Source of the DNA: Epiperipatus broadwayi
Lineage: Eukaryota > Animalia > Onychophora
Direction: 5' to 3'
DNA: 64,000 nucleotides
Assembly (NCBI GenBank): GCA_028023455.1
Contig: JAQFVV010000004.1
Coordinates: 13,268,001-13,332,000, forward strand
Position 1 is the first letter of the stretch; each line of letters begins with the position of its first letter. The notes beneath the pieces are model-generated. The model searched no databases. It had not been told where the DNA came from and was given only the letters and a program-made list of their open reading frames with translations. The translations under genes were made by a program, and so were the position numbers. Below are positions 1,781-56,060 of the stretch, one piece after another.

Positions 1781-2269
1781 TAATTTTATGTTAGTTTTAT
1801 TTTGAGATAACAATGTAGGATCTCTACTAATTAATGAATATAAATTCCAAAGTAAATGGATTTTTGGTAATTTCTAAGTGCTTTAATTTAATATTTAGTT
1901 TCAACTTGTTATCCAGGTACCAATCTTTCCAAAAGACCATCTTGGATTCTTAAACTAAAAAAAATAAGGCATTTTGAACATACATATATAAAATGTATAA
2001 AAAAATTCAAATTTTACTATTTGAATCTTTTTCCCTTTAATAATATAAATGGAATAACTTAGTGTGTTAGTACAATTATATATATGATTAACACTATCCA
2101 AAATAAATTTTAGGATTTATTCAGGATAGTTAAAAAAAAATGTTAAATTTTTTTTTTTTAGAATAATAAAAAGAAAGCAAACATTAATAAAATAAATGAT
2201 TAGGCAGGTCAGACTGTGAAACAGCAAATCTGACTCAGATTTACCATTTCAATATATATATATAGATTA

Positions 2270-2690: not shown

Positions 2691-2953
2691 TATATACTGT
2701 TCACCCAGTGCTGGGTGATTATTCTATTCTTTTTTTTTTTTTGCTTATTCTTTCGTTTTCCCAGAGAGAGACTTCAAGAAATCAGTTTGTATTCTCATTT
2801 GTTTTTCCAGAGAGACTTCAAGAGATTATTTATTTTTTATTATGCTTCTTCCCAGAGAGATTTGCAGAGATAAACCAAAGAGATTGAAAAAACAAGCTAA
2901 GCCATTTTAGAAGATATCTTGCATGACCATTGCAGGACAACTAGTATTATATT

Positions 2954-2999
2954 TTAGTTCCTGCCAATATTTCATGTTAGTTCCTGCCAATATTTCATG
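2954..2999. repeat. 23-bp tandem duplication
   Basis: ttagttcctgccaatatttcatg occurs twice. Confidence 0.9.
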
Positions 3000-5900
3000 A
3001 CCCCCAACTAAAGCTGAGGTTACTTACGCAGAATACCATAGCTATGGGGTACGAACCTAAAATTAAATGGCGAGAGCCACAGTCAGTTCAGAGGAGAGTT
3101 AAGTTGCCAAAATCTTATGGTGCTGAGGAGTTCCTGTCCCCATCAGTTACAAGTAGCACTTGCCTCACATTCAGATCACAATTTAAAAGATATGATCTGT
3201 CAAGAAAGAGCCTAGAGCCAAGTCTTCATGGAATCATTTCCAAGAAATAACAGTGTTCATCTGATTGCCACAGTATTAATAATCACCAAATGAATGCCCT
3301 TCCTACACCATCCAACAAGATGGTTATGGGGTAGAAGCCAGCTTCAGTACACCCGTCCACCTCCTTCCAAAGCCATTAAAATGTAGCCATCCAGATCCAG
3401 CGGATATTGATGATGAATATTGTCAAACCACCATAGTGAAATAAAGAAGTCCTTGCTACCCTGATGAGCAGGGGTATATAGCACATTCAGAGACCCCAAG
3501 TCCAGATGAAGTCCCAAGACACTGGAGAGTAAAACTTGTTTCAACCTTTTAATAATATTATTTTCTTTTTGTGTTTTAAAATTTGTTCAACTTTTTTAAT
3601 ATATTTTCTTACTACTCAATCATAATTAAGTCAGCAAGTAAACCAATAAATAAAATGTGTTATTAACACAAATAATAACTCAGATAAAAAAATCATAAAG
3701 CAGTTAAATCAGTAAATCAGGTATTGATACTATTATACCAGTTAATGAAACATTTAACGAATGATAATAATAAATCATAAATCAGTTATTAGATCATTTT
3801 AAATCAGGCAAGATTTTAGGATTAAAATAAAATAAAATTATATTTTAAAGATAAGTTTAAGTTACATAATTATTATGGCCATAGATCTTAGATTTAGCTA
3901 TCTTATAGGAAATTATGGATTTAGTTGAAAGTCTTTAAATTGAAGGAGTTTTATTACCATTGTCTTGTTTCTGGTGGTAGGCTTTTTCATCATCGAGGGA
4001 CTTCTTAGGTGGTGATGTCTTTCACTGCATCTCTTCCCACATCAGGTAGCTTTCATTGAGGATCAGAAGGCAAAGCAATTAGCCTTCTACCCCAACTTTA
4101 TCATTATTACAAATTTTATAATGTCTGAGTTTAATAATTAATAAATTTTAATGACTGAACGACTCAATGAAAATTGTTACAGTAGCTTTTATATTAGCTC
4201 ACCCCCCCCTCTCTCACTTCAATTTATTTTTAGATTTGCTCTACTAATTACTTCTCAAAATCATGGAAACCTGCTATGATTATTATTTTATAGGTCAACT
4301 TTAGCCTCAGTCACTCGCTATAATTTATTCATATTTCAAATTTTAAATCTAATTTTAACCTTAAATTGTAACTAGGTCATTTTATAGCAAGAAGGATTAA
4401 CTTTTCTAGCATCATCCTTTCTAGAAAAACAAATCTAAAAGATGGAAAAACATTTTGTTATATATGTAACTCGACCGTTTAATTTAGCAATATATGCAGA
4501 ATTATATAACAATTTCAAATATTACTTTTAAGAATATTTTAAATAAAGAAATCTTAATGTTTAAATTCTGTTAACATTATTCTTCTAGCATATATATAGT
4601 CTTTAGTTACACATACAACACATTTTTCATTTATTTATCCCCAGAAATATATATGTGCATATATAGATGCAATTTTCATACTATATTTTAATACACACAC
4701 ATACATGATTAACATATTTAGGTTTAATTTTAGCCTGTTTTTAAATACAATTTTAACATGATATATGAGAATTTGGTGATAGTTACACATATAGAAATAC
4801 TACTATAGAATATAGTAGGTGAAGCAGTAGGATTGTGAAAGCTGACTAAGTATTATATAATGTGAGCTTGGATGAAAAAGCTGTCATTTACTTAAAGATA
4901 ACTAATTGAAATATATGCATTTTTAAAAAAAATATTGAATATTATTTTAAAAAAATATTTACCTATAGCAAATACAAAATATAGATGTCTGCTGAAAAAA
5001 TAAATAAATGAACAAATCTTATGTGATGAAATATTCTACAGATGTTTAATGATAGAGCTATATTCATCGCAATTTGTTTTTGTTATATAAAAGTTTTGAA
5101 TTTGTATAAAAAAATATGTACATAAAAGATGTCTTATTCAACATAAAAATGGATCTTAATTATTTTTTATTAAAATATTTTTTGTATGGATAAATTTTCA
5201 TAAAAAAGACTGAAATACATATTTATCTTTCAAGGATGAATAGTATTTTCACCAGATTTTGCAGGATTCAATTTTGTTGTTTATGTGTTTATTTAATAGT
5301 GCTGGGAGAGGAGAGCAATTTTGTTCAGAATTTTCTACTCATAACTAAGCAATAGGGGGAGAATTTTGAAAGCACCGAAAATACAAGGAGAACAAGACTT
5401 TTAGTAACTTTAAATTTTTATCATTATTTGAGTTTATTGCTAATATTTTAAAATAAGATTTAACTAGCATGCTTATTATAATATATGTTCTTAATTTAAT
5501 ATTAAAATAAATTGGTTTTTATATTAAATAAAGAAAAATAAGTTTATGGAAGTTAATTTTGTGACAGGTAATAAATATTTATAATTTGCTTGGATGGACA
5601 GTCGATAAGAAACAGATCACCATTCATGCTTCCAATAATTGTTAAAATCATGGATATTATTTATTTATATTGCATTATTTGATATTTTTAAGTGATATTT
5701 TTAAATTAGTACTTTATTATTATGCATCATTGTGATTGAATATTTAAAAGTTGAATGAATCATTCATATGCTTATTAGCATATGTATAATTTATAAAAAA
5801 AGAGAATGCAAGAGAATACCTGGTAAAATATCTAGAGATATTTTTTTTAAATATTTTTTTCTCATAAATACTTGAATATTCATACGTTTCACAACCTAAT

Positions 5901-7792: not shown

Positions 7793-7838
7793 CATTATCA
7801 TCATCATCATCATCATCATTATAATAATAATAATAATA

Positions 7839-7906
<68 letters not shown>

Positions 7907-7924
7907 CATCATCATCATCATCAT
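7793..7924. repeat. Compound trinucleotide microsatellite (ATC)n-(TAA)n-(TGA)n-(TAA)n-(TCA)n
   Basis: Direct reading of the sequence. Confidence 0.97.
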
Positions 7925-9477
7925 TGGTGATTATTCTTAAATGATCCAACACCAATTGGAGATGTTTACTATTGCAATGATATCAAAATATAATTTATTC
8001 TATGAATGCCACATAAAATAAAAGATTATACAATATTTTCCAGAATCTTATGATTTATTTTATTTTTTATTGCTGAATATCAATATTTGAATAGATGTGT
8101 AATGTTAAGGATCATTAAGATGTTCTAGTTGCTTGTTGTTATTATTTTTCATGAGGGTAGTTAGATATTATGCAAAATCCCTCATTATATTTAACTACAG
8201 GGTCTTAACTAATTTGTTTTATTATTGGTGTTAGAAATGAATCTGAGATTATTTTAAAATGATTATAGAGTTTGTACAAAATGATGATGAATAAAAATTA
8301 TTAGATGATATGAGATTTAAAATAGTATTTTATAAATGAATAGTAATTAATTTATCATATTTCCATAATAGGTTTTAATAAATTTATGTTAGGATTATTT
8401 TATGTGTTTTCAAAACATGAGAATATTACAAAGTAGTTTTGTTATAAAATTTAATAGGGGTAATATTGTTATGCCATTGGAAATGCATCTTTAGGGATGT
8501 ATCCTTAATGTTTAAGCCATTGTGCCTTACTGAATATCTCATGTGAAGAGTTTTTATAATTGTATTAGTTAATTTAATCAAACCATATTTTAATTATAAT
8601 GTATGAGCTAGTTGTAACTTAAACTACTGGTAAAATAAATGAGCTGAATATTTAATTTGAACCCTGATTATTTATTGTGAATATTATATTTTAATTAAAT
8701 TAGTTTATTATATTTACTTATCATAAAATATTGATTCTGTTAGATATTGTATGTTAGTCGTATATTTTGAGTTAGTTCTGATAGTATTTATTTTTTAATA
8801 GTCATTGCTATGTAACTTGTCCGTAGTTTAGTATAGTTATTTCCAAGTTAACCAGAAAGTAAATGTCAGATTTCTTGTGAGAGTATATATGATTATTACA
8901 TTTCTATTTTTTGGCTGGGTCTAATTGAAGTAGTGTAAATCAATACAATGTTTATTGTGGTTTCACTATTTAAGCTGAAGATTATTTCCTAAAAAATATT
9001 TATTAATAATTGCTGAAAAATCCCTATTCAAATTGGTTAATACAGATATGTGAAAGGTATAAATGAAACCAAAATAACTGTAGAGATAGAAAGCTATAGG
9101 ATTTTCCAGAAGAAGTTCCATTTCCAGGATACATACCCTTGAGATAAATAATTAGGTGCAGAAAAAAATTACAAGTTGTACAGATCTTAAATATTAATTT
9201 TGTAAGCTCTCAAGTTACCAATATGGTAGAAATAATTCTTTGTGTGTAATGATATTAATATAAATAATTGTGTTATATTAGTTCTGAAATATTACTATTA
9301 TTATTAATAAAAATAATTGCCTTATAATTTATTGAATTATTTTTTTGTTCTTAAATTCTTAACCTCTCAAATTTTCTATATATCTGGCTAACTTGGGAAT
9401 TAAACCACAGCCACACAGAGAAGTTAGCCAATCATACATAGTAACTACTAATATAATATTTCAGATTCCCCCTACCC

Positions 9478-10907: not shown

Positions 10908-11466
10908 CTAGATTACTATCCTCACACACATATATAATCAGTGCTCAGCTTTATATTAAGATAGCCAATCTTCATACTTTAATGGACAGGCTTCAAACTA
11001 TTCCACCTCACAACTCTTCAACCTTCCATTTCATTGAAAATCTGGTGATGGAACGTTCAAAGCCCTTGTTAGTGCCAAGGTTGTCATCCTATCCATGTTG
11101 ACATATTAGTCATTCTGACCCCTCATGTACAGGAGAATAATCCATGTATACATACATATGTGAGGGATGAGCAGACCTTTTATACACTATTTATATAAAT
11201 TAATACATTGCACAGGCTTAAACCTGCCAGGATTCGAACTCAGACTTTCACACGATCCACTACTCTCAGTGCCATCTCATATTGCTGACCCACCTGATCA
11301 CACACATGTTGAAAAGATAAATAATCACCAATATACATATTTCATGAAGGCTGAAGAGTTGTGAGGTGGAATAGTTTGAAGCCTGTCCATTAAAGTATGA
11401 TGATTGGCTATCTTAATATAAAGCTGAGTACTGATTATATATATATGTGTGAGGATAGTAATCTAG

Positions 11467-11510
11467 ACCAACTGATGATTGCTGGTTTAGCATGAAATAC
11501 ATATATTGGT
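11467..11510 (+). ncRNA. Minimal type I hammerhead ribozyme motif (family A, inverted arm)
   Basis: ACCAA CTGATGA TTGCT GGTTT AGCAT GAAA TACATA TA TTGGT; helix I extends through GTAATC/GATTAT. Confidence 0.78.
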
Positions 11511-13764
11511 GATTATTTATCTTTTCAACATGTGTGTGATCAGGTGGGTCAGCAATATGAGATGGCACTGAGAGTAGTGGATCGTGTGAAAGTCTGAGTT
11601 CGAATCCTGTCTAAAGATGATGTAATTAATGATGCAAATAATAATTATCTTATAAAATATGTTACAATATGATATAGATATCCTATTAGTAAAAGGATGA
11701 ATTTAATCAAAAATGCGTCACTTATTTAAGTTATTTTTTCTCTCTGCTTTTGGTCTTCATCGCGATGTCTTTATCACTTCTTTACTTTTAACAATTTTAA
11801 ATTATTATTAAAACAGAAATGTAACATTAAAAATTTACTTTTCCATTCCTATAATTATTATTATTATTATTTTTATTTTTATTTATGGTTAAAAAAATTT
11901 TATTACTTTACAAAATGAAATTAATGTTTAATGTATCCCAAATTTTACTTTAATTTTCAGCTTTATTAGTGACTTTTTTAAAAACTTTTTCATTTGGTTA
12001 TCAGTCTTTCACAGAGCTATAAATGATAATATATCAATAAAATTTTTGACCAGAGTCCAATCAGAGAATCTAAAGCTATTGGACCTAATTCGTTCTTTCA
12101 AAACCAGAATACCAAACTAGCCCCACCCTCACTCCTCACAGACACTTGGGCAATCCTCCAACTCCCATCCTCTCAGCCTCTGTCATGTGCTTTGGTTTGA
12201 GAATATCCTTCATACTCAACAAAACACCATTGACATATTAAAATAATATTACAGCATGTGTATAGGGTGTAATTTCCTTCTTAAAATTACATACATATAC
12301 TGTGCTAGTAAATTAAATATAGAGTTATATAGATACAAATTAATTTAAACATTTTATTTTTACTTTATTCATGTCATGTTTGTAAAATATGCACATTGAA
12401 ATTTGATAATAAGTTTTTTGTACTCCAGAAAAGGAAGGAAAATATATTAGAGAAATATGTATATGTTTTAGGTGATGATAAGGGTTCAATTAATGATTAA
12501 ACTTGTGTAGAATGTAACAATAGAAAATATTTACATTATTTGTGATAAAAAATTGCTTTTGGTAAAAAGCCAAGAAAGCCAAGAAATATTTGCTAATTCC
12601 AAATATTTCTTGATTCTATTTAAGTTGAACTTACTAATTAAAAACACAAAGATAAAAATAAGACCTATAACAATCAAGGGTGAACCTTGGATTGCCACAG
12701 GCAAATCTGGGGGGGGGATAAATAGTGGGTGCAGCAAAGTGCCCTGTTCTTATTCCAGTTAATTTACCAAATGAACTGTTGGTACGATATTTTAATGGAC
12801 AATAGCTGTAAGAAACTTAAGTGACAGTGCAGCACTCCAGTGTGAAGCCAATATGTTTGTGAGCAACAGCTGAATGAAGCCAAAGAACTCCGTTAGTTTG
12901 AGGTGCGGAGCCAAAGTGCTTTGGAAACTGAGAGCAAGGAAAACCATTCAACAATCAGAAAGCTGTATAAGCATCATAGGAATTGAACCACAAGTGAACT
13001 ATATATATACTGTGTTGGAGTATATCAATAACTATTCCCTACTAATAACTTTTCATCATTATTTCAGTCTGCATCTAAATTTATTATTTATTAATTTATT
13101 TGTTGATATTCTGAGTATCTGCATTCGAATACATAACAATTCACATTTCCCCTCTTGTTGTACAACCATAAATGAGTAAAACATCTTGTTTGAAGTTTAT
13201 AGTTCTTTCAGGCAGTCTTTTTTTTGTCATTTTTTAAAATTGCACCCAAATAAAAGATGATCACATTCTTGACATCATTTGAAAATAAATGGCAATTTGA
13301 GAGAACTAATACTTTCTTGCATTATAGATATATTCTTTTGCTAAATTTTGGGAAAGGGTATTGCCCAATAAGATTATTTCAGGGGATTCCAACTTAGTTA
13401 TGCTTTTAATCTTCTTGTTTATTTAATCCTAGGATGGTTGGTTTGTCATTACCATATTGTTTAATCATTAGATTATTGGCTTATTAATATTACAGTTTAA
13501 TCATTTATTTAAGTTTAATTTTAAATTATCAAAGCATTTCTATCAAATTTTCCTTTTTATTTATACATACGATATTTTATTAATATGAACACAAATTAGA
13601 AATCCTTTTATTTAGAATTTATTATATAATATTTAAATATTTAACAGTTGTAAAGAAATCGGCATATTATGAAATAAATAATACAAAGTATAGTTAGTAG
13701 TAATATAATAAAAAAGAATGAGCTTAAATATAAAACACTTTGAATTAAATAGAATTAAAAATAC

Positions 13765-17212: not shown

Positions 17213-17787
17213 AAAAATGATGGTGTTTTGAAATTTTGTGTTATTAAAATAAAATGAGATGAAAGATATTGAAAATAAGAAATTATCAAAAGTGTTATAA
17301 ATAAAAGGTCAAAAGTATATATATAATCAGTTTTTCATTCAAACCTGAACCATTATTAGATTGGACAAGTAGAAAAGAGAAAAAACTACCAGATGCTAAA
17401 GACTAACCTGAATCTTTGATGAATTTTATTAAACTATTATAAAGAAATCTCTACTCAAAATAAGGATAAAAAAGCTTAAACATCAAATTTTAAATACAGG
17501 AGATTGATAAAGGATACTATAAGGAAATAAATATGATTATACATGAAATAAAATAATGCATGCCATTATGTAAGAAATATTAGCTTGCATAGAAATCCTC
17601 ACAATGAACTGTAAAGAATTCCGGCCACACACTTTACGTTATGTAAGTAAAAAATGTTGATTGATTTCATTGATAGTAACAATCAAGTTTTTTATTTTAT
17701 GATGTCTTAGAATATATTAATTCTAACAATCTATATATTAGTATATGTAAGGTATTTATATAATATATTATTTAATTGATTGATTGA

Positions 17788-17865
17788 AACAGGCAAAACT
17801 CTCCATATAGTAGTGCCACCCAGTGCAAGCCAGAGGAATCAATGGATGCTAGCATATGCTGCTAA
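17788..17865. repeat. Family B terminal fragment
   Basis: aaacaggcaaaactctccatatagtagtgccac...gcaagccagaggaatcaatggatg matches the B left ends at 21889, 29405 and 41879. Confidence 0.85.
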
Positions 17866-21450: not shown

Positions 21451-21888
21451 ATTAAATTTAAATCTGAAATGCTGAAAAACTAAAACTGTGTTTTTGAAAT
21501 ATCATGTTAAATTTGAAGAATAATTATGAGGGAAACCATATGCCCCACTGAAAAAATGATTAAAAAAGCATAAACTAATAACTAAAGATAAAAAAATGAA
21601 TGAACCTTATGTAACTGACCAAATCTGAACCAATTGATTAATTTCAGTTGGAAAAAAGGCAAAATATAAAGGAAAATGTAAAAATAAAGAGTAAATTTAA
21701 GGCTCACATGACAATAACAAATAATCTTATAAGTATATAACATTTCATAATGATAGGAAGCTACTTATTATTTTTAAGATAAAGAAGAAAAATCAGGAGG
21801 ATCCTCATGGATAATTATGTAAACTTTATATTGACTTCTATCCTTGACTAAGTATCACTTTAACTTCAGTATTCAGAAATATAAATAT

Positions 21889-22119
21889 GCAAAACTCTCC
21901 ATACAGTAGTGCCACTCAGTGCAAGCCAGAGTAATAAATGGATGGCAGCAGGTTTCTGCATAAAATACCTATCTAGTGCCTACTCATCCAATACCCCCAA
22001 ACTAGTTTCTAGCTTGTGGCTTTCATCAATGAGTGGCACTACTGTATGAAGGTTTTTGCCTGTATAATAACAGTTATGAGCAAGTGTAAATAATGATGAT
22101 CATGTGATGTTTAGTGGTT
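21889..22119. mobile_element. Family B fold-back element (short inverted arm) with tail and 12-bp TSD; decayed hammerhead at 21994-22033 (-)
   Basis: Inverted arms 21889-21918 and 22030-22059; tail aataacagttat...gtttagtggtt; aaatataaatat occurs at 21877-21888 and 22120-22131. Confidence 0.85.
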
Positions 22120-23314
22120 AAATATAAATATACCTGTTCCTATGCTAATACTGTCACTGGTCACATTAGCTATACCTGGAGAATAGAGGAAGAATACTAC
22201 TACTTTAATTCTGTTATATATTAACCTATGTGCTATTACTAACAGCTGAATATATTTGGAATTTAAATAAAGTTAAATTTTTTTAAAAGTCTTTAAATAA
22301 TTACTATTAGATGATAGAAATGGTTCAAAATATAAATAAAAGTAAAATGCCACAATCATGAACATTCACACCAACATGCTTTGCAGAACACTTTTATAAT
22401 TTTATTATGTCATCTTTTTTTAAAATGCTTTTATTAAAGTTGAAAAATCAGTTTGTTTGTTTATTTGTTAAATTTTGATCTTTTCAAATTGAGGTTTAAT
22501 ATATTTAAATTCAATAGAATTTCTTGAAATCTGATATATAACTAAGTAATACCAGAGTAATCCAAATAAGACATTTATCTTTTCAGTAGGTTACCTGGTT
22601 TATTAAATATAAAACAAAGGGCAAGAAAATATTAAAAAATATTCAATAATTTCATGTATCACAGTTAAAAACTATTTTTAGAACTTCATGAAAAAATGGT
22701 ATAAAGATTTTTTTTTTCAATTTAGTATTTTCTTAACATTTTAAAATTGATATTTAATACATTTATGTTCATTATAACTTATTGAAATTTTATACATTTG
22801 TTTAAAATGTCTAAAGTGATAGAACATATTAATTTTTTAAATAGATGAATTAGTTTCATAGATAGGAAGAGTGAGGGGAAGGTTTTGAATAATGGTCACT
22901 ACCAATTTTATTTGTTACAATTGCAAGCTTCATTTAAGTGATAAGAAAATTGTTCATAATAAAGTTTTATTTAAAACATTTTTTAAAATAAAAATAAAAA
23001 CTGTCAAAATGTAAACCATTTTTCACTTAAAAGAATATTTCATATTTTTAGTCATTTATATATGCATATATTATTATGTACACATACCAAATATGATATA
23101 TACATAAGAAGTGTAAATTTAATTTATAGCATAAATTTGTAGTGATGTATGTATATATATCAAATATAAGTGCTCTGTCAATTTTAAATATGATATACTT
23201 TCCATTTTCATTTATTATGCCAATACTAACAACTTAAAAAATAATAAATAAAATTTTTTTATATATTGAATGTGTTTATTGACTTTGCCTTAAAAAGATG
23301 GAAAAAATCAACCA

Positions 23315-27755: not shown

Positions 27756-28111
27756 ATAGGAATAAGAAACTAGATCTAAACACTCACTCCAAGCGTTTAA
27801 GAAACAATTTATATTCAGCTTGCAAGCGTGAATCTTTTAGACATGTAATGTCTTCAAACTCAGCATAGCAAGCCAGATAGCTATATGGGTCTAATATCAG
27901 TTCAGTATCACCACCTAGTAGAAGCCTCTGCAATATATATCATTGCAAGAAAACTTCAAAAGTACATTTATGAAAAACAAAAAACAAGTTAAACTTGCTA
28001 ATGCTTGTATTTATGATCAATAGATGGCATTTTACCAAAAACACCATCAAAGCATATGTTTGTTTACATAAGCATCAGAGTAAACATTCACTATCTTTTT
28101 CATTAGTTCCA

Positions 28112-28156
28112 CCCTCAGATCATGATTTCAAGCTGATTTGCTATCATCAGTGAAGG
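28112..28156 (-). ncRNA. Minimal type I hammerhead ribozyme motif (family D), intact core
   Basis: CCTTCA CTGATGA TAGC AAATCA GCTT GAAA TCATGA TC TGAGGG; helix III is the palindrome ATCATGAT. Confidence 0.85.
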
Positions 28157-28335
28157 ATAGGAATAAGAAACTAGATCTAAACACTCACTCCGAGTGTTTA
28201 TGAAACAATTTCTATTCAGCTTGCAAGCGTGAATCTTTTAGACATGTAATGTCTTCAAACTCAGCATAGCAAGCCAGATAGTTATATGGGTCTGATATCA
28301 GTTCAGTATCACCACATCTAGTTTCTTATTCCTAT

Positions 28336-28380
28336 TCTTCACTGATGATAGCAAATCAGCTTGAAATCATGATCTGAGGG
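28336..28380 (+). ncRNA. Minimal type I hammerhead ribozyme motif (family D), intact core
   Basis: TCTTCA CTGATGA TAGC AAATCA GCTT GAAA TCATGA TC TGAGGG; predicted cut after C28374. Confidence 0.85.
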
Positions 28381-28737
28381 TGAAACTAACAAAAGAGATA
28401 GTGAATGTTTACTCTGACATTTATGTAAAAAAACATATGTTTGACGATGTTTTTGGTAAAACGCCATCTATTGATCATAAATAAAAGCGTTAGCAAGTTT
28501 AACTTTTTTTTTTTGTTTTTCATAAATGAACTTTTGAAGTTTTCTTGCAATGATATATATTGCAGAGGCTTCTACTATGTGGTGATACTGAACTGATATC
28601 AGACCCATATAGCTATCTGGCTTGGTATGCTGAGTTTGAAGACATTACATGTCTAAAAGTTTCACACTTGCAAGCTGAATAGAAATTATTTCATAAACGC
28701 CCAGAGTGAGTGTTTAGATCTAGTTTCTTATTCCTAT

Positions 28738-28782
28738 CCTTCACTGATGATAGCAAATCAGCTTGAAATCATGATTTGAGGG
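28738..28782 (+). ncRNA. Hammerhead motif (family D) with C17U at the cleavage site
   Basis: CCTTCA CTGATGA TAGC AAATCA GCTT GAAA TCATGA TT TGAGGG. Confidence 0.75.
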
Positions 28783-29513
28783 TGGAACTAATGAAAGAGA
28801 TAGTAAATGCTTACTCTGATGTTTATGTAAACAAACATATGCTTTGACGGTGTTTTTGGTAAAATGCCAACTATTGATCATAAATACAAGTGTTAGCAAG
28901 TTTAACTTGTTTTTTGTTTTTCATATATATAGAACCATTAGAAACCAGTTAGCCTTGAGCCTTATTACACTTATTATTTCATATATATAGTATAATTTTC
29001 AGGAGATTCCATGTAGTAAAAATAAAATAGCTAACATTTCAGTACAATAACAAGTATTTTTCTCAGAGCATCTTTTTCAAACCTTAACAATGTGGGTGAA
29101 ATTTAAAATCATTACTTTTTCATTTTATTATTTTCTTCTTATATTCAAATTTTATTGATTGAAAAGATTTTATTCTTCAATAGCTTTTTCCAAATATTGT
29201 TTATTTTTTTCTATTCACACTGTTTATTTATGTTATTGGGCCTTTTAAAAATCTCTATAGTTTCTATTAACAGTCTCTGATCACATTGTTCAATTTTAGT
29301 GAGCATATATGTGTTTTATTTAAATTAATCTCATAGTTAGTTAATTTTATGTGTGAATAAATGGCTGACAAATTGTATTTTTCTCTAATTGCCAAAATAT
29401 ATTTAACAGGCAAAACTCTCCATACAGTAGTCCACCTTGTGACAACCAGAGTAATAAATGGATGCCAGAGGCTTGTGCATAAAATCCATATCTAGTGCCT
29501 ACTCATCCAATAT

Positions 29514-29553
29514 CCCCAGAGTATTTTCTGGCTTTTGGCCTTCATCAGTGAGG
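29514..29553 (-). ncRNA. Hammerhead motif (family B left arm)
   Basis: CCTCA CTGATGA AGGC CAAAA GCCA GAAA ATAC TC TGGGG; the helix III palindrome is degraded. Confidence 0.7.
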
Positions 29554-29677
29554 AACCTTGGATCTGAGAGCCCTGCAACTAGATTTTAGGATCCAATGCA
29601 ACCCTCCGGCAGCTACCTTTTATTTCTACTTAACTACAAAACTAAGATCTAGGTGCAGTGTTCTCAGATCCAAGGCT

Positions 29678-29717
29678 CCTCACTGATGAAGGCCACAAGC
29701 CAGAAACTAGTCTGGGG
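29678..29717 (+). ncRNA. Minimal type I hammerhead ribozyme motif (family B), GTC cleavage triplet
   Basis: CCTCA CTGATGA AGGC CACAA GCCA GAAA CTAG TC TGGGG; palindrome ACTAGT; helix I extends through ATCCAA/TTGGAT. Confidence 0.85.
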
Positions 29718-30054
29718 ATATTGGATGAGTAGGCATTAGATAGAGATTTTATGCTCAAACCTTCTGACATCCACTGATTATTCTGGTTGGCACAGGGTGG
29801 CAATACTGTATGGAGAGTTTGCCTGTTTAATAACAGTTATGTGCTAGCATAAAAATGGTGATCATGTGATGTTTAGTGGTTTAACAAAATATATTTATTT
29901 TATGATTGATCTGTCCTATGTATAAATGTGAACAAACTCCACATGGAATTTCATATACAACATGACATTCTATGGAAATCTCCCAAAAATGATAGTATAA
30001 AATCATTTATTTGTGAGAATATTAGAATCAACACACACAAACATATATATATAT

Positions 30055-31640
30055 ATTGTACCAGGTCAAACCACCGAAACCACTTACTTATACGTATATA
30101 TAAGTTTTGGCCGGTTTCAAACTCTTTTCTAATACATTTATAATCTTATAAATGCTACGTGGACGAACCAGCACCTTCGAGCAAAATGGGAGATCTTATT
30201 GATAGCTTTAACTATCAAAAATGGCCTATCTTGGCTGCTATATTCAAACCCCTACTATCCAAATACTTTGTTTCGGGGTAAACCCCGGGGTGCCAGCTAG
30301 TCTGAGGTCTAATGTATTTGGGCAGTAGGCTCATAATCCAGTGCTCGAAACATTCCCTAAAACTAGCTCAGTCTAATTTTAATTCAATAATGAAATTATA
30401 CAAAATTTGTGGTGGAAAGAATTAATAAAAGGTTGGTAAAAAGAATTGACTGACAAATAAAGTTTAAGTTTGAAGACATTTTATTTTAATTAACATTAAT
30501 TAAGTTTAAAGATAATTTATTACCCAATATTTATTGACTAAATTTAAACATCTTTATAAATCTAATATAATACACACACATTCTAAATTAGCATTTCTAA
30601 ACTAGTTTAAATATTCTTGTAGATTTTAATAGTAGAACACTGGTATTTATCTAATTTAACTAATAACACTGATATAATGATCACACACATTATTAACTCA
30701 TATATCATTCACAAATATAATAATAAAGCATTAATAGCATTTGAAACTTAAACACACATATCAATAATTCATTTAAGTATGATAGAGTTCATATAATTTG
30801 AATCTTGAATATTTACAAATTACAGCAGTGGCTACTATGTATAAATGATAATAAATAAATGTTTACCTAGGATTTTTGGAACAGGGATATTGCTTGTTGT
30901 TGGCTGCTTCTGCTGCTTCTGATGGATTATATCTAACTGGTTAGATTTGTATGTTTCTTGAAGAGATTTTATGTGAATCCATTGGCTTTATTCTTGAAGA
31001 CAGTTGAATGTTTGATGGAGGATTTCTGAGTTGTTATGCAGACATTATTTCACAGGCAAGTTTTGATGATCTTGTTGGACTAAAAAGGCTGAAGCACGAG
31101 CATATATTTCCAAAAGCTGCTCAACAATGCATTTTTGTTTCTGAATACATAATAGAAATGCACTGTTATCTCAATTGACTGAAAAAAACTGCCAACTAGA
31201 CTGAAAAAAACTGACTCCAATAAAAAAATCTGGCTATTTATGTATCCAAATTGTTTTCATTTTAATATCCTCTGGCAAAAGGTGCAATAGGTGTTGTCGA
31301 AATTCCATTAGTAATTAATCCTATGACAATGTGTTTTTGTCAATTGTTTAATTAGTAGTACCTATTTTAAAATGTGTTGTTTTCATATCTTTAATTAGTA
31401 GTCCACCACTGTGTTTTTAAATAAATCTTTATTTAACTTAATAGCCATCGCTGTGTTTTCCAAATATAATTTCTTTTTTAACTTTCATTTACATATATAT
31501 ATATATTTAATATTATTCTCACACGCATACATTTATTTACACTCGCACGCACATATATAATTTATTATAATAAGTTTGAAAGAAAAGAGATTTATATTTT
31601 TTTTAAATTTTAAATTACTTATTTTTACGAATACTAATTT
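30055..31640 (-). mobile_element. Family E, ~1.6-kb unclassified dispersed repeat, copy 1
   Basis: Colinear reverse-complement similarity to ~37480-38997 across the GC-richer terminus, the AT-rich middle and a decayed coding-like block. Confidence 0.75.
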
Positions 31641-32561: not shown

Positions 32562-33291
32562 AATACATGTATGGTGTTTATATTTTAAGCTAGGTGTAAT
32601 TAGAGACAACTTGAACCCAGACTTTTAAGCTCCCTTTAGTCATCCACTCCATCTTATGCAGCCGATACACATGACCACACACATAAAAAAAGGCTAATTT
32701 ATCTCCAATATATACATTTTATGCTGGACCAGCACTCATCAGTTGGTCCAGATTATCATCTTCTACACATATATACAATTAGTGCTTGGCTTATATTAAG
32801 ATAGCAAGTCCTCAAACTTTGATGGATGGAGTTTAACCTTCTCCACTCTACAACTCTTCAGTTATCCATATCTTTGAAAATCTAATAATGATGAATTCAG
32901 ATCTTTTGTTTGCCAATTTTTGTTGAGTCATACCCATGTTGACCAAAGTCAATCTAATCCCTCATAAGTAGGATGTTAAGCCCAACTTAAAATATAAATT
33001 CTACACATGTAATTAAAATATGAATGACCAAAGAGTTGGAGAGTGAAGAAGATTGAAACCTGTCTATTAAAGTTTGGGAATTTGCTATTTTAATATAAAC
33101 TAATCACTGATTGTATATACATGTGGAAGATGATAATCTGGACCAGCTGATGAGTGCTGGTTGAGCATAAAATGCATATATTGGAGATCATTTGCCTTTT
33201 TCACAAGTATGTGGTCAATATGTATTGATTGTATGAGATGGAATGAATAACTAAAGGGAGATTGAATGTCTAGGTTCAAATCCCCTCTACT
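32562..33291. mobile_element. Family A fold-back copy (older), with hammerheads at 32705-32746 (-) and 33143-33184 (+) both showing GAAA->AAAA
   Basis: Arms ~32610-32865 and ~33035-33290 are reverse complements and homologous to 10722-11609; a low-complexity 15-bp repeat tatatatatatatta occurs at 32547-32561 and 33292-33306. Confidence 0.8.
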
Positions 33292-39879: not shown

Positions 39880-40480
39880 AATTAATAATTTATAAAGTGC
39901 ATACTCATTAAGTAAGTAATATATATTAAGGCTATAACCTGAAGATTATGAACCTAAATGTGACAGTAGGGATCTCAAATCAAAATGCTTTAGATTCACC
40001 TATATAATTAGAAATTAGGTCAAAGATAAGAGTGGCCGCTCTTGTCTTTTAAAGTTGTTAATCTTGTATTAAGATTTGTACAGGTCCCTACTGTTGCATT
40101 TAGGCACATAGTCTTAAGGTTATAGCCTTAATATATATTACTTACTTAATGAGTATGTGCTTTATAAATTATTAATTACAACTTTAAATTGTTTTAAAAG
40201 ATTTTTATTTATAAGAGCTTCACACTGACTCGTAAATTGTAAGATTTTGTGTATATTAGTTTGAACTGAAGTTGTGGACTTAATCAATGAAGTAGTTAAT
40301 AGCTTCACACTCTCAAATCAAAATGCTTTAGATTCACCTATATAATTAAAAATTAGGTCGAAGATAAGAGTAGCTGCTCTTTTCTTTTAAAGTCATTAAT
40401 CTTGTGTTAAAATTTGTAGAGTCCCTACTGTCACTTAGGCACATAATCTTAAGATTATAGCCTTTATATATATTACTTTC
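39880..40480. mobile_element. Family C fold-back (arms 39880-39976 / 40083-40177) plus an adjacent longer direct copy (~40216-40478)
   Basis: The left arm switches at ctcaaatcaaaatgc into the sense copy; 39975-40140 is repeated at ~40315-40478. Confidence 0.85.
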
Positions 40481-40932: not shown

Positions 40933-41876
40933 TACTTTCTTCTTTATGCTAGAGAATTTTTACTTAAAAGCTGGATAAGGTTACTTCTTCCTTCATGAAG
41001 CAGCGATGCTGGCCAAAGGATGGACAACAAAACCTTTCAGCAAGCTATTCTGTTTAAAAATTAAATCATATATGCATAAAATCATCATGTATTTAAATAA
41101 TAATACAATTTTTATAATATTTCTCTAACTATTTGCATGCTTTCCTATGATGATCTTAACTGCAAACTTTTCTAGTTCATATTCTTCCTCTGTCTGCAAC
41201 ATGTATTCTGATATAAATTTACTACACAACACCCTTTTTATATATTATTGAGTGCTTTTTTGAAAAATAATTTAACTGACACTGTCCAAACTTTTTACCA
41301 ATTCCATCTCAATATTATGTCTATCAAAAACAGTATAATTAACCCCTGACAAATATTATCAATAGCCTGTTTTTTGAAACACAGGGAAAAAATATATGAT
41401 GATGATTAATAACTGGAAATAAAAAAGAAAACGGAGAAAATAAAAAAAAAATTACCTTTTTTAATATCACAAATTCATTTCAGAATATTGCTTTTATATA
41501 AAATAAAATTTAGATATATCTTTACTCCTCTTAGTGAGGACAATTGGTCCCCCAAAACTAATCATTAATCATAAAGACTAGTAATTATAATGGTTTTCTA
41601 TGGGAAAAAATTTGGCTGGTTACTCCAGCTAAAAATTATATTATAAGCTATGAATAAACCTAGTATATATAGTAATTAAAAAAAACCTTAATGTATATGC
41701 TCGTGTAAACTGTACTATGTGTATTATCCAAGTTTGCACTTAAAATATATATGTATATATGATAATGCAACTTAAATCTATATAAAAAATATATCTTAAA
41801 GTTGTTCTTTCCAGTGATTCATTCACCAATCATAATTATTTAATTGTCTAATTCATGAATTACTTAGTCTAATGTC

Positions 41877-42236
41877 TTAAAACAGGCAAAACTCACTATA
41901 CGTATTGCCACACACAGCAAGCTAGAGTAATCAATGGATGCCAGAAGGATTGTGCATAAAATCCCCATCTAGTATCTACTCATCCAATATTCCCAGACTA
42001 GTTTCTGGCTTGTGGCCTTCGTCAGTGAGGAGCCTTGGATCTGAGAGCACCTAAGCCAGAAACTAGTCTGGGGATATTAGATGAGTAGACCCTAGATGGG
42101 GATTATATGCATAAGCCTTCTGGCATCCATTGATTACTCTATCTTGCTGTGTGTGGCAATATGTATAATGAGTTTTGCCTGTTTTAAAACAGTTATACAC
42201 AAGCATAAGAAGTGGTGGTCATGTGATGTTTATTGG
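41877..42236. mobile_element. Family B fold-back element with tail and 14-bp TSD
   Basis: Arms ~41879-42050 and 42053-42184; cttagtctaatgtc occurs at 41863-41876 and 42237-42250; the right arm starts inside the hammerhead. Confidence 0.9.
41991..42030 (-). ncRNA. Minimal type I hammerhead ribozyme motif (family B), intact core
   Basis: CCTCA CTGACGA AGGC CACAA GCCA GAAA CTAG TC TGGGA. Confidence 0.85.
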
Positions 42237-43051
42237 CTTAGTCTAATGTCCATTGTTGTCTCTAGAGAAGAAAGTTTACAATGAATGAGTGATGTGCTTT
42301 TTGGATATTTTTTATATGGGATATGTCATTTCATGATTTTTGGAAAGTTTGAATACATCTACAATTGTTTGAGCCCTTTGTTTATTTTTGTTTTTAAAAA
42401 TAATTGTGATGGTAAACATGTAAGAACAAGTATCACAATTTCCTCCTTTTTCTAGTTGACTTAGGTTTCTGTTTCCAAGCTCAGGGATCTTTTTTATTTT
42501 TTCATTGGTCATATTGGTTGCAGCCATGTTTCTAATTGAAAATGTATGTAGCTATAAACTTTTAAACAGATCACTAGAAATAATTTTTTAACTGTTCAAA
42601 AGTACAGAAAAATGAATAAGAAAGTGAAAGTAAACTGGCAGTTGACAATTTTTTGTGATTTTTTGCATAACTGTTTCTCATTGCAGTAAAAAAAATCATA
42701 CTGGTTTTTTTCGAATTTGTATCATTATATTAAATCATTAGTGTAAGAGTAGCAAAATTAGCATATTGTACATTGTCAAAATCTTTTCACAGTTAATTTT
42801 AAAAAAAAAAAATCTGACTTATTAAAAAAATGTATCTAATTCATTTTGTGTTTGCATATTGTAATCAATATTTAAGGCTTTTTTACCATATGTAATAAAG
42901 ATCACTTTATATACAAATACACTAGCTGTGGCATTTCCCCCCACAAGATGTCATATTTTATTAAGTGCAGTGGACATGTTTTTGCAGTGGACATATTCTT
43001 TGAAAGGACTTAATATTTTTTCAGTTAGTGTAATGTTCCCCTTTTTTCTTC

Positions 43052-47240: not shown

Positions 47241-48002
47241 ATGGTGCCACTAGCGGAAAAGGTTTTTACTTTTGATTGAAAAGATGTCAGGTAAAAATGC
47301 TAATACTAAATGACATAATTTTAATTTGCAATTTCCATTTTTAATTGGTTATTTGTTTAATTCCATATATAAAATTTATCTACATAAATATATGAGCATT
47401 CTTATATTTTTAATATATATATACAATTCTTATGTTATATATAGAGTTAGTAAATAAGATCATAACAAACTTTGCAGAATACCCCAAATCTCAGACCAGT
47501 TTCTGCTACTGGCTTCCTCAGTGATTCTTATACAGTATATACAATTATGTATGAACAAAAGACAGAAAAAAATCTTTTAGGAATATTGTTGCTACTCGCA
47601 ATAACATTGTTCTACATTAGATTAAATCATTACAACATACATCTTTCAATGCATTACATTTTCAGAAATACCAGAATTATAAACATGTGCTCTCTATAGT
47701 AAATGCTGATCAGTAAAAAAATATATAATTTATATATATCATTCATTAATACAATTACATAGTTTAAACGTGTGGCTGCAAATAAAATCGAAAATATATT
47801 AACATAAATTTCCAATTTCTGCAATCTTATGTATGAAGTATAGCAATCATAATAATGATTTTAAAGTTTTAAAAAATCTTGCCTAAAAAAAATAATTAGT
47901 GATCACTTACGTATTTATTGCTGGATTGTTGTTTTGAATGAATGCTAATTAAAAGTGCAGTACTTATAAACTAGGATTTTCTATTTCTTTCCTTTTCCTT
48001 TT

Positions 48003-49810: not shown

Positions 49811-50000
49811 ATTTATTAAATGCACATTGATTACGTAGTAATATTTACTGAGGCTATAACCTCGATAATATGCGTGTAAAATGCGATAGTAGGGACCTCT
49901 TTTCTTTCATAGCGTAAGCTTGTGGTTAAAACACCTGTAGAGGTCCCTACTATCGCATTTTACATGCATATTATCGAGGTTATAGCCTCAGTAAATATTA
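49811..50000. mobile_element. Young family C fold-back element with ~62-bp near-perfect arms, left tail and 14-bp TSD
   Basis: Arms ~49838-49899 and ~49939-50000; cataataatcttaa occurs at 49797-49810 and 50001-50014. Confidence 0.9.
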
Positions 50001-50560
50001 CATAATAATCTTAATAAAGATTTCCACTTTTTAAAGACAGCTTAGCATACAAAAACATCAATAGAAGTCAATTAAAATCTGGAGAACTTACATGTAATTG
50101 TTTAAAGATGTATTTTCAAGACACTCATTATTTATAAGACTTGTTTTCAAATGTTAAAATGTGTTGTTACTTTGATTTGGTGCTCTCTTAAAAGATTTCT
50201 TTCTTCGAATCTATACAATGAACATTTCAATTTTTCATTTTTTAAATTACACTTTTATTCTTTGCAATTAGCCTGCTTTTGACTGACTTTGACTCACTAA
50301 TCTTTTTATATAAGCTTCTCATATACTCTAGTGAGGTTGCTTTAAAAAATAGTTGTTAGACTTGTTTTCGAATTTTTTGATAATGACATCATCTTTATTT
50401 TTTTTTAAATTCATACTTTATATAGAATGCTTTAAAATAACATCCTTGACTAACAAAACGTTTTATTAAAAAAAAAAACTATGATTAAAAGAAAACAAAG
50501 TCAACATTTTAACTTATTAATGGGGCTCATATTTTTTTAAATATACACATTCATAGAAAA

Positions 50561-51255: not shown

Positions 51256-51859
51256 ATTCTTATAAAGTTGTTGTAATTGAGTATTCTGAAAAGGTAAAAA
51301 TTAAAATTCATGACTTTTATAATTCATTGAGCATGCTTTCTTCAGACCCCTACCAAAATCATAGTTATATTAATTTAGTAGTTGAAAATTATGCCTATAT
51401 ATATATAATTTATTATGTAAATGAGGTTTAATATGTAAATGCAGCATTTAAATATTCCATATTTTCAAGAATGGAATGCATAAATCCTATCTCTTAATTG
51501 CATTTGTATCATTTGCCATTACCCAAGTCTCCTTTTCTTTTTCTATCATGTCTTTCAACATAAATGATCCTCACATTAGTGGAACTAAAAGTATGATCCA
51601 TAACAAACTTACAATTAAGAAAATTGATTTATATTCATTATTCTATTTTGCTGTATTGTATAAGTATGCTGCATTTACATATCAATCCTCATTTACATAG
51701 TAAATTATACTGATATATAGGCATAATTTTCAACTGCTAAGTTAATACAGCACTATGATTCTAATAATGGTCTGCTGAAAGCATGCTCAGTACATTATAG
51801 TCTTCAATTTCAACTTTTATTTTTTTCTAATACTTGAATGCAGTGAGTTTATAAGAATT
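51256..51859. mobile_element. Family J fold-back with ~195-bp arms; decayed hammerhead-like motif at ~51753-51800 (+)
   Basis: ~51256-51452 is the reverse complement of ~51662-51859; CTAATAA TGGTCTGCT GAAA GCATGC TC AG, palindrome AGCATGCT. Confidence 0.7.
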
Positions 51860-51867
51860 ACATTAAT

Positions 51868-53002
51868 AATTTAGAAAATGTTAAAACATTTAACAACAAA
51901 ACAAGTTGGTGAGCACTTTCAATACTGAATAGGATCATAATCATAGCATAATATGACTAAAGGAAGTTGAGAATTAAATTTAAAGTCACTTTTAAATATT
52001 AAAAAATAGATCATAAAATTGAATTTTTAGGAGTAGATTTACATACTAATAATGGAACTGAAAGCTACAAATGCCATTTTTTTTAGAAATATGGGTGAGA
52101 GGGTCCTTTTTATTGAATGTGCTATCATCTTTAATTATTGACCACACCTCCTTTACCTTTCTCTTTCTATCTTCTCTCTTGGAACAAACAATTTCAGTTG
52201 TAGAGAAGTCAAAGTTGTGGCCTGACTGCAACTCATGATCCAAGAAAACAGAAGTGTATTCATTGCTTGTCTTGGCCCAGTTGTGAACAATTAAGATCTA
52301 CATTTCAAAAGTCCCACATAAATTAAAAAATAGTTATATCCATATATACAATACCAGTTTTTGCTCATCTCCATTTTTAAATAAATTATTAACTAGAGAG
52401 GCTTCACATCAAATTGTATATAAAATTAATTGCAAAGATTTTAATTGCTCAAAGGCTTGCTATGGTGAAAATTGAACTAACTTATCTACAAGATTTGACC
52501 AGCATAATTATCTATATAACCAGGCCAAGAAAAACAATGAATACTCTTTTATTTTCTTTGATCATGAGATGCATTCAGGCTACAACTTTGACTTCTCTAT
52601 GGGTAATATCATTTGTCATGAGATAGATGACAGAAAAAGAAAAGTGAAGGAGGTGTGGTCAATAGCTAAAGATGATAACCTATCAATAAGAGTGACTCTA
52701 GCATTCATCTTCCTAAAAATAGTAATTGTAGCTTCCAGTTTTGTCATTTGTATGTAAATCTACTCCTAAAAATTTAATTTTATGATAATCTATTTTTTAA
52801 TATTCAAAAGTGTCTTTAAATTTAGATCTCAACTTCATCATATTATGTTATGATTATGATAGTATACAGTATTGAAAGCACTCAGCTTTAAATAAATGTT
52901 CTTTATCACCAATTCAACCCTGTTTTATTGCTAAATGTTTTAACATTTTCTAAATCATTACAATTATTGCAGAAAAACAGGACATTTTTTTTTTCACTTA
53001 AA
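51868..53002. mobile_element. Family F: Penelope 3' fragment (GIY-YIG plus 3' UTR) with inverted 5' copy, ~38-nt tail and 12-bp TSD
   Basis: Plus strand VYKINCKDFNCSKACYGEN*TNLSTRFDQH...HSGYNFDFS...DDRKRKVKEVWSI; minus copy HELQSGHNFDFSTTEIVCSKREDRKRKVKEVWSI; arms ~51868-52260 and ~52550-52962; aattacattaat occurs at 51856-51867 and 53003-53014. Confidence 0.85.
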
Positions 53003-54824
53003 AATTACATTAATTAAAAGAAAAGAGAATTAAATATTTAGAATTATTATTGAGAAATGTAGAATAATTTGTTGTAATTTTCAGATCATATAAAATATTA
53101 AAATACTGAAGATGCATGTTTTTAAAAAATGACATATGCCTTCAGTTGGGAAAAGATGTTTTTCTGTGAATGCTGCAGAGATAAAAATTGTTATGTAAAT
53201 GAGAATTAAATTTATAATTGTTAGATAAATCAAATTAAAAACTCTAAATAAAAAGTAAAAATCAAACTTAAGATGAAAAGAATTGATTTATTAATCTGTT
53301 TAAATTAACTCTTACATATGATGGTAAATTTAATACTTCATTTTACTTGTTAATATATTTCAGTCTATTTAATATATCAATGATTTCCCTAAAATCTCTC
53401 GATGAGGATTGTCACATCTAAATAGGGTTTTGGTTTTGGAGAAAATTATGTGATTAACAAGCAAGCACTGAAGTGGATGAATAACTTTTGACTGAGTCAC
53501 TTTTTGTCAGTGCTTATGTGAGAGCTAATCATCTCTCTATAGGTGCTCAGGTATACCCTATCTCACATAGATACCTTAAGCATCAAGGAGGATTGCATTT
53601 TGGCTTTGGTTTGTATACTAACATTTTAATTAATGAAAATGTTTTAATATTATAGTTATCCAATACATATCCAATGTTGTCTGTAGTTTTCTTTATATAA
53701 GAACTACATATTCTAATAAAAAGTATTCTTGCTGTATTTGTACTATTGGTATTATAGTCATTCTTTATTGATATTCATATACATGTATAATTCCTTTTTT
53801 CAGAAAACTTTTAATACAGAGAAGGAAGGTTCTTATGAATGATTACCTAGTCATAGAATAGATTTGAATTAATTTATGGTAAGATCAAGTATCTATCTAT
53901 ATGTGTGTGCTTTTTATATATAAAAATGTTAAGATAATATTTATAGTTTGTTTAGAAACAAAAATGTCAAAAAAAGAGACTTGTTCACCAGTTTTTGTTT
54001 TCAAGTATTTAATTTTACTGTGTAAGCTATCAATACATATCAAAAAGCCATTTTCTTTTTATTTTCTATGTGACAAAATAAATGTGTTATTAAAATATTT
54101 GAGCCAGTCGAAGATTTGTAGAAAACAGAATCTATAGTCTAATTCAAATTCCTTTAATAAAATATTTACAAAAGTATTACAGATCGGGTATCTCACTGGA
54201 ATCTCAATCACGTGTTTGTAATGCTGATCATTATAAATAAAAAGATATCAACAAAGCAATGTTTGGCCAAAGCCATAATGTCTTCTAGTAAACTAGAACA
54301 GAAAGAAGCTATATCCAGAGCTTCATCGGGTGATATGATGATAAACAACAAGATGATAGAATCGGCTAAGAATATCACTCATCATAATTAATGACAGGAG
54401 TAGAGTGAATTAATCGTTTATTAAGAATTTCATAAATAGAATTTTTGATTGTATCCGATTTCTCAGATATTTTTACTAAGACCAGAATGTGTGATCCAAG
54501 GACCTTAAGATAAAAGAATTGAGTAAAAGTCTTTTTTGTACATTTTTATTAGACAATAGAAATTAGAGTTACCTTTCATAAAATATTTTTATTTTACGTA
54601 TTATTATTATTAGTAAAACATTTTAAAATAAGAGCCTTAGTGGTATAATCTCTGTTTGTTTAAATATAAGCTTTATCGGTAAGTCTCGAATTATATTACC
54701 ATAGATGATAAGATCCATAATAACTATATCATACACTTTGTTGGCAGGAAATATTTCTACAGATAAATGTAATTTAATATTTTTTTAAAACGAATTTTTC
54801 TCCTTTTTGTAATATAATTTTTAG

Positions 54825-55572: not shown

Positions 55573-56060
55573 GCATTTATTTTTATAGCACTATGTCTTA
55601 TAAATTGCAATACATTAAAGATCAGCCTTTCCAAGCTATTGTGCATTCTCTTTTTACGAGTGTTAATAATAAATGAATACTTTCATTCCCAACACAAGAT
55701 ATAGTATTTATAAAAGAATAAAATAAATCCACTTATTCTTTCCAACCCAGATGCTTATATATACTTATTTACATATGTTTAAGTTTCATATGAAAGTGAC
55801 GTTTAGTAAATTCTAAATAATTTTGTCGACGTCATTCATTCAGACATCGTAAACAGTAATTTAAAATGAGTGGTCTATCCTCACGCTTTCATTTCCAGAA
55901 CTTAAGATTTGTCCATATATAAGCATTTGGGTTGGAAAGAATAAATGGATTCATTTTATTCTTTCATAAATGCTAAATCTTGTGTTGGGAATGAAAGTAT
56001 TCATTTATTATTAACACTCATAAAAAGCGCATGCACCATAGCTTGGAAAGGCTGATCTTT
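55573..56060. mobile_element. Family G fold-back nested in the Gypsy leader: ~148-bp arms, ~42-nt left tail, 15-bp TSD
   Basis: Arms 55615-55762 and 55915-56062; aaggatgtggaataa occurs at 55558-55572 and 56061-56075. Confidence 0.88.

Follow-up and report, generated by a model that had tools for sequence, protein, structure and literature searches.

Family B is, with a probability of roughly 0.8, a non-coding, non-autonomous, retrozyme-like retroelement that has a unit of ~420–456 bp, carries a minimal type I hammerhead motif and inserts in the manner of Penelope-like elements (PLEs). This reading is based on target site duplications (TSDs), two fixed outer ends, variable head-to-head junctions, the similarity of arms and tandem units within single insertions, and PLE copies of the same format. 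Together, the junctions, the outer ends and the arm similarity indicate that the palindrome of each copy arises at insertion instead of being a fixed terminal repeat.

Results

Family B copies in the window and in the genome

The genome assembly comprises 5.6 Gb in 18,588 contigs and belongs to an AT-rich animal. The window, that is, the whole stretch of 64,000 nucleotides analysed here, has a GC content of 27% overall, with a range of 24–34% along its length. The sequence-only reading had placed three family B copies at 21889, 29405 and 41877, and we located them at 21889–22119, 29406–29884 and 41877–42236 (copies 1, 2 and 3, respectively; Table 1). They share the left terminus region and the fixed tail that had been described; the tail, put at ~55 nt, is about 50–58 nt long and present on one side only. 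The unrelated TSDs of 12, 13 and 14 bp were also found as claimed, and all three are perfect direct repeats. The arms do differ in length, the measured values being ~30, 185 and 135–139 nt in place of the ~30, ~165 and ~130 given earlier.

Unit positions refer throughout to a natural monomer (L059:2001–2421, 421 nt), which was used instead of a consensus. On this monomer, copy 1 runs from unit position 364 down to 205 in inverted orientation and is joined to 331–420 in direct orientation; the corresponding segments are 367 down to 117 joined to 175–421 in copy 2, and 370 down to 191 joined to 230–419 in copy 3. The tail-less inverted arm of all three copies begins near unit position 365, and each copy has its own junction. 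These junctions are asymmetric, the tail-less arm reaching 124, 58 and 39 unit positions deeper than the tailed arm. What had first been read as the “loop” of copy 2 corresponds to the 58 nt by which its inverted arm outruns the direct arm. No TSD was recognised for the fourth copy, a fragment at 17787–17852. The flanks of copies 2 and 3 (29000–29405, 30043–30290, 41470–41876 and 42260–42640) are high-copy repeats with 700–3,300 first-look candidates, and 30043–30290 has 92% identity to >40 places; these two family B copies thus inserted into older repeats.

Table 1. Family B copies, PLE fragments and other fold-backs in the window
Feature	Positions	Strand	Comment
Copy 1 left TSD, 12 bp	21877–21888	.	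Identical to 22120–22131
Copy 1 tail-less inverted arm	21889–22043	-	Unit ~364 down to 205
Copy 1 decayed hammerhead core	22000–22029	-	Within inverted arm; A:U stem II variant
Copy 1 direct arm, ~30 nt	22040–22069	+	4 nt (22040–22043) common to both arms
Copy 1 tail, 50 nt	22070–22119	+	No counterpart in left arm
Copy 1 right TSD	22120–22131	.	
Copy 2 left TSD, 13 bp	29393–29405	.	Identical to 29885–29897
Copy 2 tail-less inverted arm	29406–29644	-	Unit 367 down to 117; hammerhead core decayed
Copy 2 junction overlap CTA	29642–29644		
Copy 2 direct arm, 185 nt	29642–29826	+	Arm is unit 175–367
Copy 2 hammerhead motif	29668–29726	+	Predicted cut after 29712
Copy 2 tail, 58 nt	29827–29884	+	
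Copy 2 right TSD	29885–29897	.	
Copy 3 left TSD, 14 bp	41863–41876	.	Identical to 42237–42250
Copy 3 tail-less inverted arm	41877–42050	-	Unit ~370 down to 191
Copy 3 intact hammerhead core	41996–42025	-	Within inverted arm
Copy 3 direct arm, ~135 nt	42053–42187	+	Unit 230–367; begins inside hammerhead
Copy 3 tail, 49 nt	42188–42236	+	
Copy 3 right TSD	42237–42250	.	
Fourth family B copy, fragment	17787–17852	-	Tail-less arm start, unit 363 down to 298
PLE, head-to-head GIY-YIG C-terminal fragments	51868–52998		With flanking repeats, 51852–53014
PLE ORF piece	52046–52243	-	
PLE ORF piece	52569–52757	+	
Other fold-backs	27963–28931, 32672–33217, 55604–56073, 10923–11609, 39880–40177, 49829–50010, 36237–36559		

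Fold-backs are a dominant repeat form in the window, which contains at least seven more of other families, with arms of 72–355 nt and 78–98% complementarity (Table 1). A microsatellite at 7794–7925, in which (ATC)n/(AAT)n passes into (ATG)n and back, also reads as a palindrome. Among the other features of the window, an ORF of 282 aa at 314–1162 (+) matches the integrase core domain (rve, E = 1e-13) and is probably the remnant of an LTR retrotransposon or DNA transposon. A tRNA-like sequence at 61738–61809 (+) (Rfam tRNA, 36 bits) departs from standard pairing at several places in the acceptor and D stems; it could be a tRNA gene or a repeat that derives from a tRNA.

A genome-wide search with copy 2 returned 8,144 first-look family B candidates. 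A second search used only the tail plus 27 nt of arm as query, so that its loci were unselected for any junction. The resulting sample of 60 loci, 55 of them distinct, was mapped on the monomer. We identified 63 head-to-head junctions in the 55 distinct loci, as well as one in each of the three window copies. The mapped loci include simple fold-backs and fold-backs with arms that cover up to ~3 tandem units, and five loci (L034, L040, L048, L059 and L060) contain head-to-tail arrays with a period of ~420–456 bp. The most variable part of the element is the stretch directly after the tail. In the reference monomer the spacer from the tail end to unit position 38 measures 37 nt, whereas it is 72 nt in a subfamily (L004, L006, L008, L010 and L027, about 1427–1500), which brings the unit to ~456 bp. 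No ORF longer than 54 aa was found over three tandem units; family B as an autonomous PLE, encoding a reverse transcriptase and a GIY-YIG endonuclease, was accordingly rejected.

Target site duplications and outer ends

An exact flanking repeat of 9–15 bp was present at the ends of 39 of the 60 family B fold-backs. Among 120 shifted controls, in which one flank was displaced by 120 nt, six reached 9 bp and none reached 10, and the target duplications of family B are therefore far above chance. Their GC content is 17%, compared with 26% in the flanks.

Outer ends were analysed in the 37 insertions for which a TSD of 9 bp or longer lies within 14 nt of both mapped ends. All 37 have one end at unit position 355–372 and the other at 402–421, with a single outlier at 434; neither a two-tailed nor a tail-less insertion occurs among them. 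Six of these bounded insertions were bystanders that had been selected by no query. The two fixed outer ends point to two initiation sites, one per target strand. Beside the tail-less end, the TSD terminates in TTA in 10 of the 37 insertions and so matches the element at that point, which suggests priming there.

The left flanks of all three window copies were searched for a second haplotype or empty allele, and no near-identical second place was found. For copy 3, three paralogues of the host repeat have ~60 nt between the matched flanks where one TSD would be expected, a spacing that is derived from match coordinates and is ambiguous.

Junctions between the arms

The 35 junctions that were unselected for resemblance to copy 2 are all different and spread over unit positions 38–381, with clusters near 59–67, 163–186 and 195–208. 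The overlap at the joint is mostly 0–3 nt, which the breakpoint-interval method gives as an upper bound, and a filler of 1–23 nt is present at about one third of the junctions.

The junction of copy 2 is 117|175, and this junction or 128|175 is common to at least 20 insertions that arose independently and have different TSDs; a variant of the junction sequence shorter by 8 nt also occurs among them. The breakpoints are thus not fully random. The overlap at junctions of this type is CTA, and the variants use three successive TAG/CTA sites (TAG in the sense strand). Position 175, the side that does not vary, marks the edge of a near-palindrome of 13 nt that includes AGATCT, and one-sided breakpoints at 175–183 recur with other partners. 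The 117|175 and 128|175 variants are interleaved in the arm phylogeny, where L008 groups with L005 and L016, and L015 with L004. Most copies of this set carry the tail on the short arm, and three carry it on the long arm. We interpret 117|175 as a hot spot of joining.

Similarity of arms and tandem units

The sequence-only reading had proposed that the palindrome is no fixed terminal inverted repeat (TIR) but is generated anew at each insertion, and had called for a comparison of arm-to-arm with copy-to-consensus divergence; here the comparison was between arms and between copies. If whole palindromes were inherited, the divergence between the arms of a copy should equal or exceed that between copies; we observed the opposite. 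In the 48 fold-backs whose arms overlap by 50 nt or more, mean divergence is 9.9% within copies and 14.4% between copies, and the arms are more alike within the copy in 44 of the 48 (Wilcoxon p = 3.6e-10). With the copy-2 subfamily removed, within-copy arms are closer in 24 of 28 (p = 1.2e-4). This result, together with the 35 of 35 differing junctions, bears out the proposal.

Some family B arms exceed one unit in length, and these composites allow tandem and inverted units to be compared. In the youngest copies, L002, L004 and L008, the arms are 0–1.8% apart, yet these copies differ from each other by 6–7%. In L004 and L008 all units, whether neighbours in the same arm or located in opposite arms, are at most 1.7% apart. 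Older composites show the same agreement of same-arm with opposite-arm divergence: 5.5% versus 4.5–6.3% in L010, 5.3% versus 5.3–6.9% in L014 and 8.2–8.6% versus 6.6–10.4% in L040. The inverted and tandem units of one insertion are essentially identical at birth. Because the units of the youngest composites are within 1.7% of each other when their lineages are 6–7% apart, and because same-arm and opposite-arm divergences are equal in older ones, each insertion with all its tandem and inverted units could have been built at integration from a single monomer-length template, a tentative reading that we consider possible rather than probable. The window copies combine perfect TSDs with arms that are 8–17% apart. 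Their arms may not have been identical at birth; alternatively, the GC-richer element may mutate faster than the AT-rich target.

Hammerhead motif

In the direct arm of copy 2, stem I of the motif is split by an internal loop into two parts of 6 bp each. The core is CTGAYGA (CTGATGA in copy 2), with C and T about equally frequent at position 7. Stem II, GGC/GCC, is closed by A·A and followed by GAAA, and stem III consists of 2 bp inside the palindrome ACTAGT, after which come a C and the predicted cut site. The window has four occurrences of the core pattern where 0.12 would be expected, two of them in family B. A further hammerhead-like core (CTGAGGA ... AGAAAC) lies outside family B at 47499–47521 (-).

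Across 110 distinct instances of the motif, 90% of the pairing cells pair. Covariation of helix II had been noted from the window copies, and the larger sample agrees: the outer stem II pair is G:C in 86, A:U in 12 and G:U in 3 of the 110 instances, and it is the only real covariation in the motif. Cells changed on both sides number 17, a count reached by none of 500 shuffles, in which the value is 7.8. The compensatory change in stem II may reflect a single event.

Rfam gave no hammerhead match for family B at gathering thresholds or at E values up to 10, as expected for a dimer-type minimal variant. Matches of the palindrome to Rfam plant microRNA hairpins were rejected as spurious. By folding energy, the 72-nt hammerhead and the tail region are no better than shuffles. 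The RNA of the whole monomer is predicted to be more self-paired than shuffles (z = -2.4).

PLEs in the same genome

A six-frame search for GIY-YIG returned >10,000 first-look candidates, many with open frames of 800–900 aa and many forming divergent pairs. Two loci, L073:673–3306 and L074:2586–5222, contain intact PLE ORFs of 877–878 aa with YVDD and GIY...YIG motifs. Pfam hmmscan gave no match for the lysine-, asparagine- and isoleucine-rich 877-aa PLE ORFs, despite which the six-frame genome search found GIY-YIG at the same place in both loci; composition-biased proteins of this genome can escape a family scan.

The PLE copies form 3.1-kb tandems and head-to-head pairs with arms that are 99–100% identical. 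The inverted repeat of one such pair (L064) stops ~75 nt before the right end, which leaves a one-sided tail, and a 9-bp repeat flanks the whole. The window itself contains a head-to-head pair of GIY-YIG C-terminal fragments (Table 1); its tail of 38 nt is restricted to the right side, and it is flanked by a 16-nt repeat in which one position mismatches. This pair has the same insertion format as family B. In tblastn of two PLE ORFs against the window there was no match, and the GIY-YIG fragment is visible solely on translation. Among 22 sampled PLE loci, drawn from the >10,000 candidates, none shares a 3′ region or other sequence, or the hammerhead type, with family B.

Discussion

Proposed mechanism of insertion

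Based on these observations and on published work on PLEs, we infer an insertion carried out by a PLE-type enzyme, in which both target strands would be primed and the hammerhead would have a role. The enzyme would make a staggered cut in AT-rich DNA, which would later give the duplication of 9–15 bp, and both freed 3′ ends would prime cDNA synthesis on family B RNA. One cDNA would start at the tail end (unit ~402–421) and the other ~54 nt further in (~355–372). The two cDNAs would grow toward each other and be joined at a variable point, with an overlap of 0–3 nt or a short filler. The predicted product is a head-to-head pair of 5′-truncated copies of which just one bears the tail.

Partial tandems, an adjacent inverted 5′-truncated copy and a tail of 30–40 bp that is often one-ended are standard features of PLEs (PMC8557442). 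A purified PLE protein cuts and extends both strands; reverse transcription starts at two internal sites in the RNA, the spacing of which corresponds to the tail, and hammerhead cleavage is dispensable in vitro (PMC11167929). In that system the two start sites are used equally by both strands, whereas family B uses each site once per insertion. This difference speaks against the PLE reading, as do the longer tail of family B, the absence of shared sequence among the 22 sampled PLE loci, the lack of an Rfam hammerhead match, the unremarkable folding energies of motif and tail, and the arm divergence of 8–17% in the window copies. Animal non-LTR retrozymes were defined in PMC7229834, which suggests their mobilisation by PLEs, and a 2026 preprint relates retrozymes to PLE pseudo-LTRs (bioRxiv 10.64898/2026.07.22.740005); a dependence of animal hammerhead repeats on PLEs is proposed in both. 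Term searches of these two sources found no mention of fold-back insertions, and the same kind of search in the preprint found none of a one-sided tail. Family B fits known PLE-type behaviour, to which it adds a quantified footprint: each insertion has one tail and two fixed ends, and its arms and tandem units are produced as it forms.

Alternative explanations

The mechanism originally suggested for family B was a fold-back or template switch during target-primed reverse transcription (TPRT). The variable TSDs of 9–15 bp fit TPRT, and this part stands. The more specific version, in which a single cDNA primed on one strand snaps back or switches onto itself, fits less well and appears improbable to us. 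It is compatible with the variable junctions and their short overlaps or fillers, and with the likeness of the arms of one copy. Such a cDNA should run through the tail or stop at variable points, yet the tail-less end is confined to 355–372 in all 37 bounded insertions; the TTA match beside this end suggests that priming occurred there, and biochemical work on a PLE directly supports priming on both strands (PMC11167929). Much further from the data is a SINE mobilised by a LINE, with the 5′ inversion produced by twin priming as in L1, which we regard as very improbable: variable TSDs and 5′ truncation are LINE-like, but neither poly(A) nor a simple repeat forms the 3′ end of the window copies, the site of second priming does not vary, inverted and direct segments cover some of the same unit positions where twin priming leaves them adjacent, and an identical format is seen in PLE copies from this genome. 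Least credible of all is a DNA transposon or foldback/MITE derived from one long-TIR master, in which the inversion points would be internal deletions. This had been named as the scenario that would overturn the sequence-only reading, and it finds no support among the mapped copies. Many copies do match the whole 479-bp form of copy 2 at 82–89% identity. Against this, TSD length varies, a tail of 50–58 nt lies at one terminus outside the inverted repeat, arms can exceed the supposed master by covering several tandem units, no copy retains a common centre together with a deletion within one arm, and arms diverge less within copies than between them; the explanation is already contradicted.

A narrower question concerns the copies that share the copy 2 junction. 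Their palindrome might be inherited, a fold-back master being transcribed and its RNA serving as template for the junction and the 58-nt single-copy centre; only the outer arm would then be re-copied from its partner in each round, and the fold-back would be partly heritable. We consider this rather unlikely. The sharing of one junction sequence, or of its 8-nt-shorter variant, by at least 20 independent insertions with different TSDs speaks for inheritance, as does the occurrence of 117|175 in 0 of the 35 unselected junctions, which shows that this joint is not a very frequent outcome. On the other side, the arms within these copies are 0–13% apart (mean 6.6%) compared with 10–12% between copies, and there are no fixed differences between long and short arms. 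Inheritance also sits poorly with the interleaving of the two variants in the arm phylogeny, with the three copies that carry the tail on the long arm, and with the breakpoints at 175–183 that have other partners. The use of three successive TAG/CTA sites is what would be expected of repeated microhomology joins beside the AGATCT palindrome.

Implications

PLE integration is still poorly understood, and the link between animal retrozymes and PLE enzymes rests mostly on co-occurrence and sequence relatedness. An abundant short non-coding family provides a dense natural record in which both initiation sites, the junction and the target duplication are kept. The one tailed and one tail-less end of every bounded insertion (37 of 37), the arms re-made per insertion and the junction hot spots constitute testable constraints on the mechanism. 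If the single-template reading were true, it would imply reverse transcription by a rolling-circle or iterative template-jumping route, with a circular or dimeric hammerhead RNA as one conceivable template. Reverse transcription would then proceed from both target ends with each start site used strictly once per event, a rule stricter than the behaviour in vitro.

Comparison with known systems

Family B resembles PLEs of the Penelope/Poseidon type, such as PAc of Anolis, in its variable TSDs in AT-rich targets, its adjacent inverted 5′-truncated copy, its partial tandems and its tail at one end only. A minimal hammerhead, putative in family B, with a very short stem III and a location upstream of both termini, is a further likeness; the distances from cut to terminus are ~119 and 173 nt in family B, counted from the predicted cut, and ~90 and 120–130 nt in PAc. 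Unlike PLEs, family B has no reverse transcriptase or GIY-YIG protein, measures only ~420–456 bp and has no detectable sequence in common with the 22 sampled PLE loci. Its tail of 50–58 nt compares with 30–40 in published PLEs.

With the metazoan non-LTR retrozymes (Cervera and de la Pena, 2020) family B shares a short non-coding head-to-tail repeat with a type I hammerhead, TSDs of >4 bp, co-occurrence with PLEs and a monomer that is predicted to be strongly self-paired. Retrozymes are recognised by a type I hammerhead in head-to-tail repeats of 150–450 bp and by expression as self-cleaved circular RNA; in the first respect, family B has one motif, of the minimal variant, per unit of ~420–456 bp. 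The hammerheads of retrozymes are canonical with a stable stem III, whereas that of family B is minimal and PLE-like, with its 2-bp stem III in the palindromic ACTAGT.

As in L1 twin priming, two cDNAs would arise from the two ends of a staggered break and be joined with little or no microhomology. In L1, however, the second site is variable, the inverted segment lies upstream of the direct one so that no palindrome results, and the element ends in poly(A). Long inverted arms and high copy number are features in common with foldback/MITE DNA transposons, which are characterised by a fixed-length TSD, symmetric termini and inherited arms; family B has none of these three. Elements with a one-sided tail, re-made arms and junction hot spots are thus easily mis-annotated as DNA transposons of the foldback/MITE kind.
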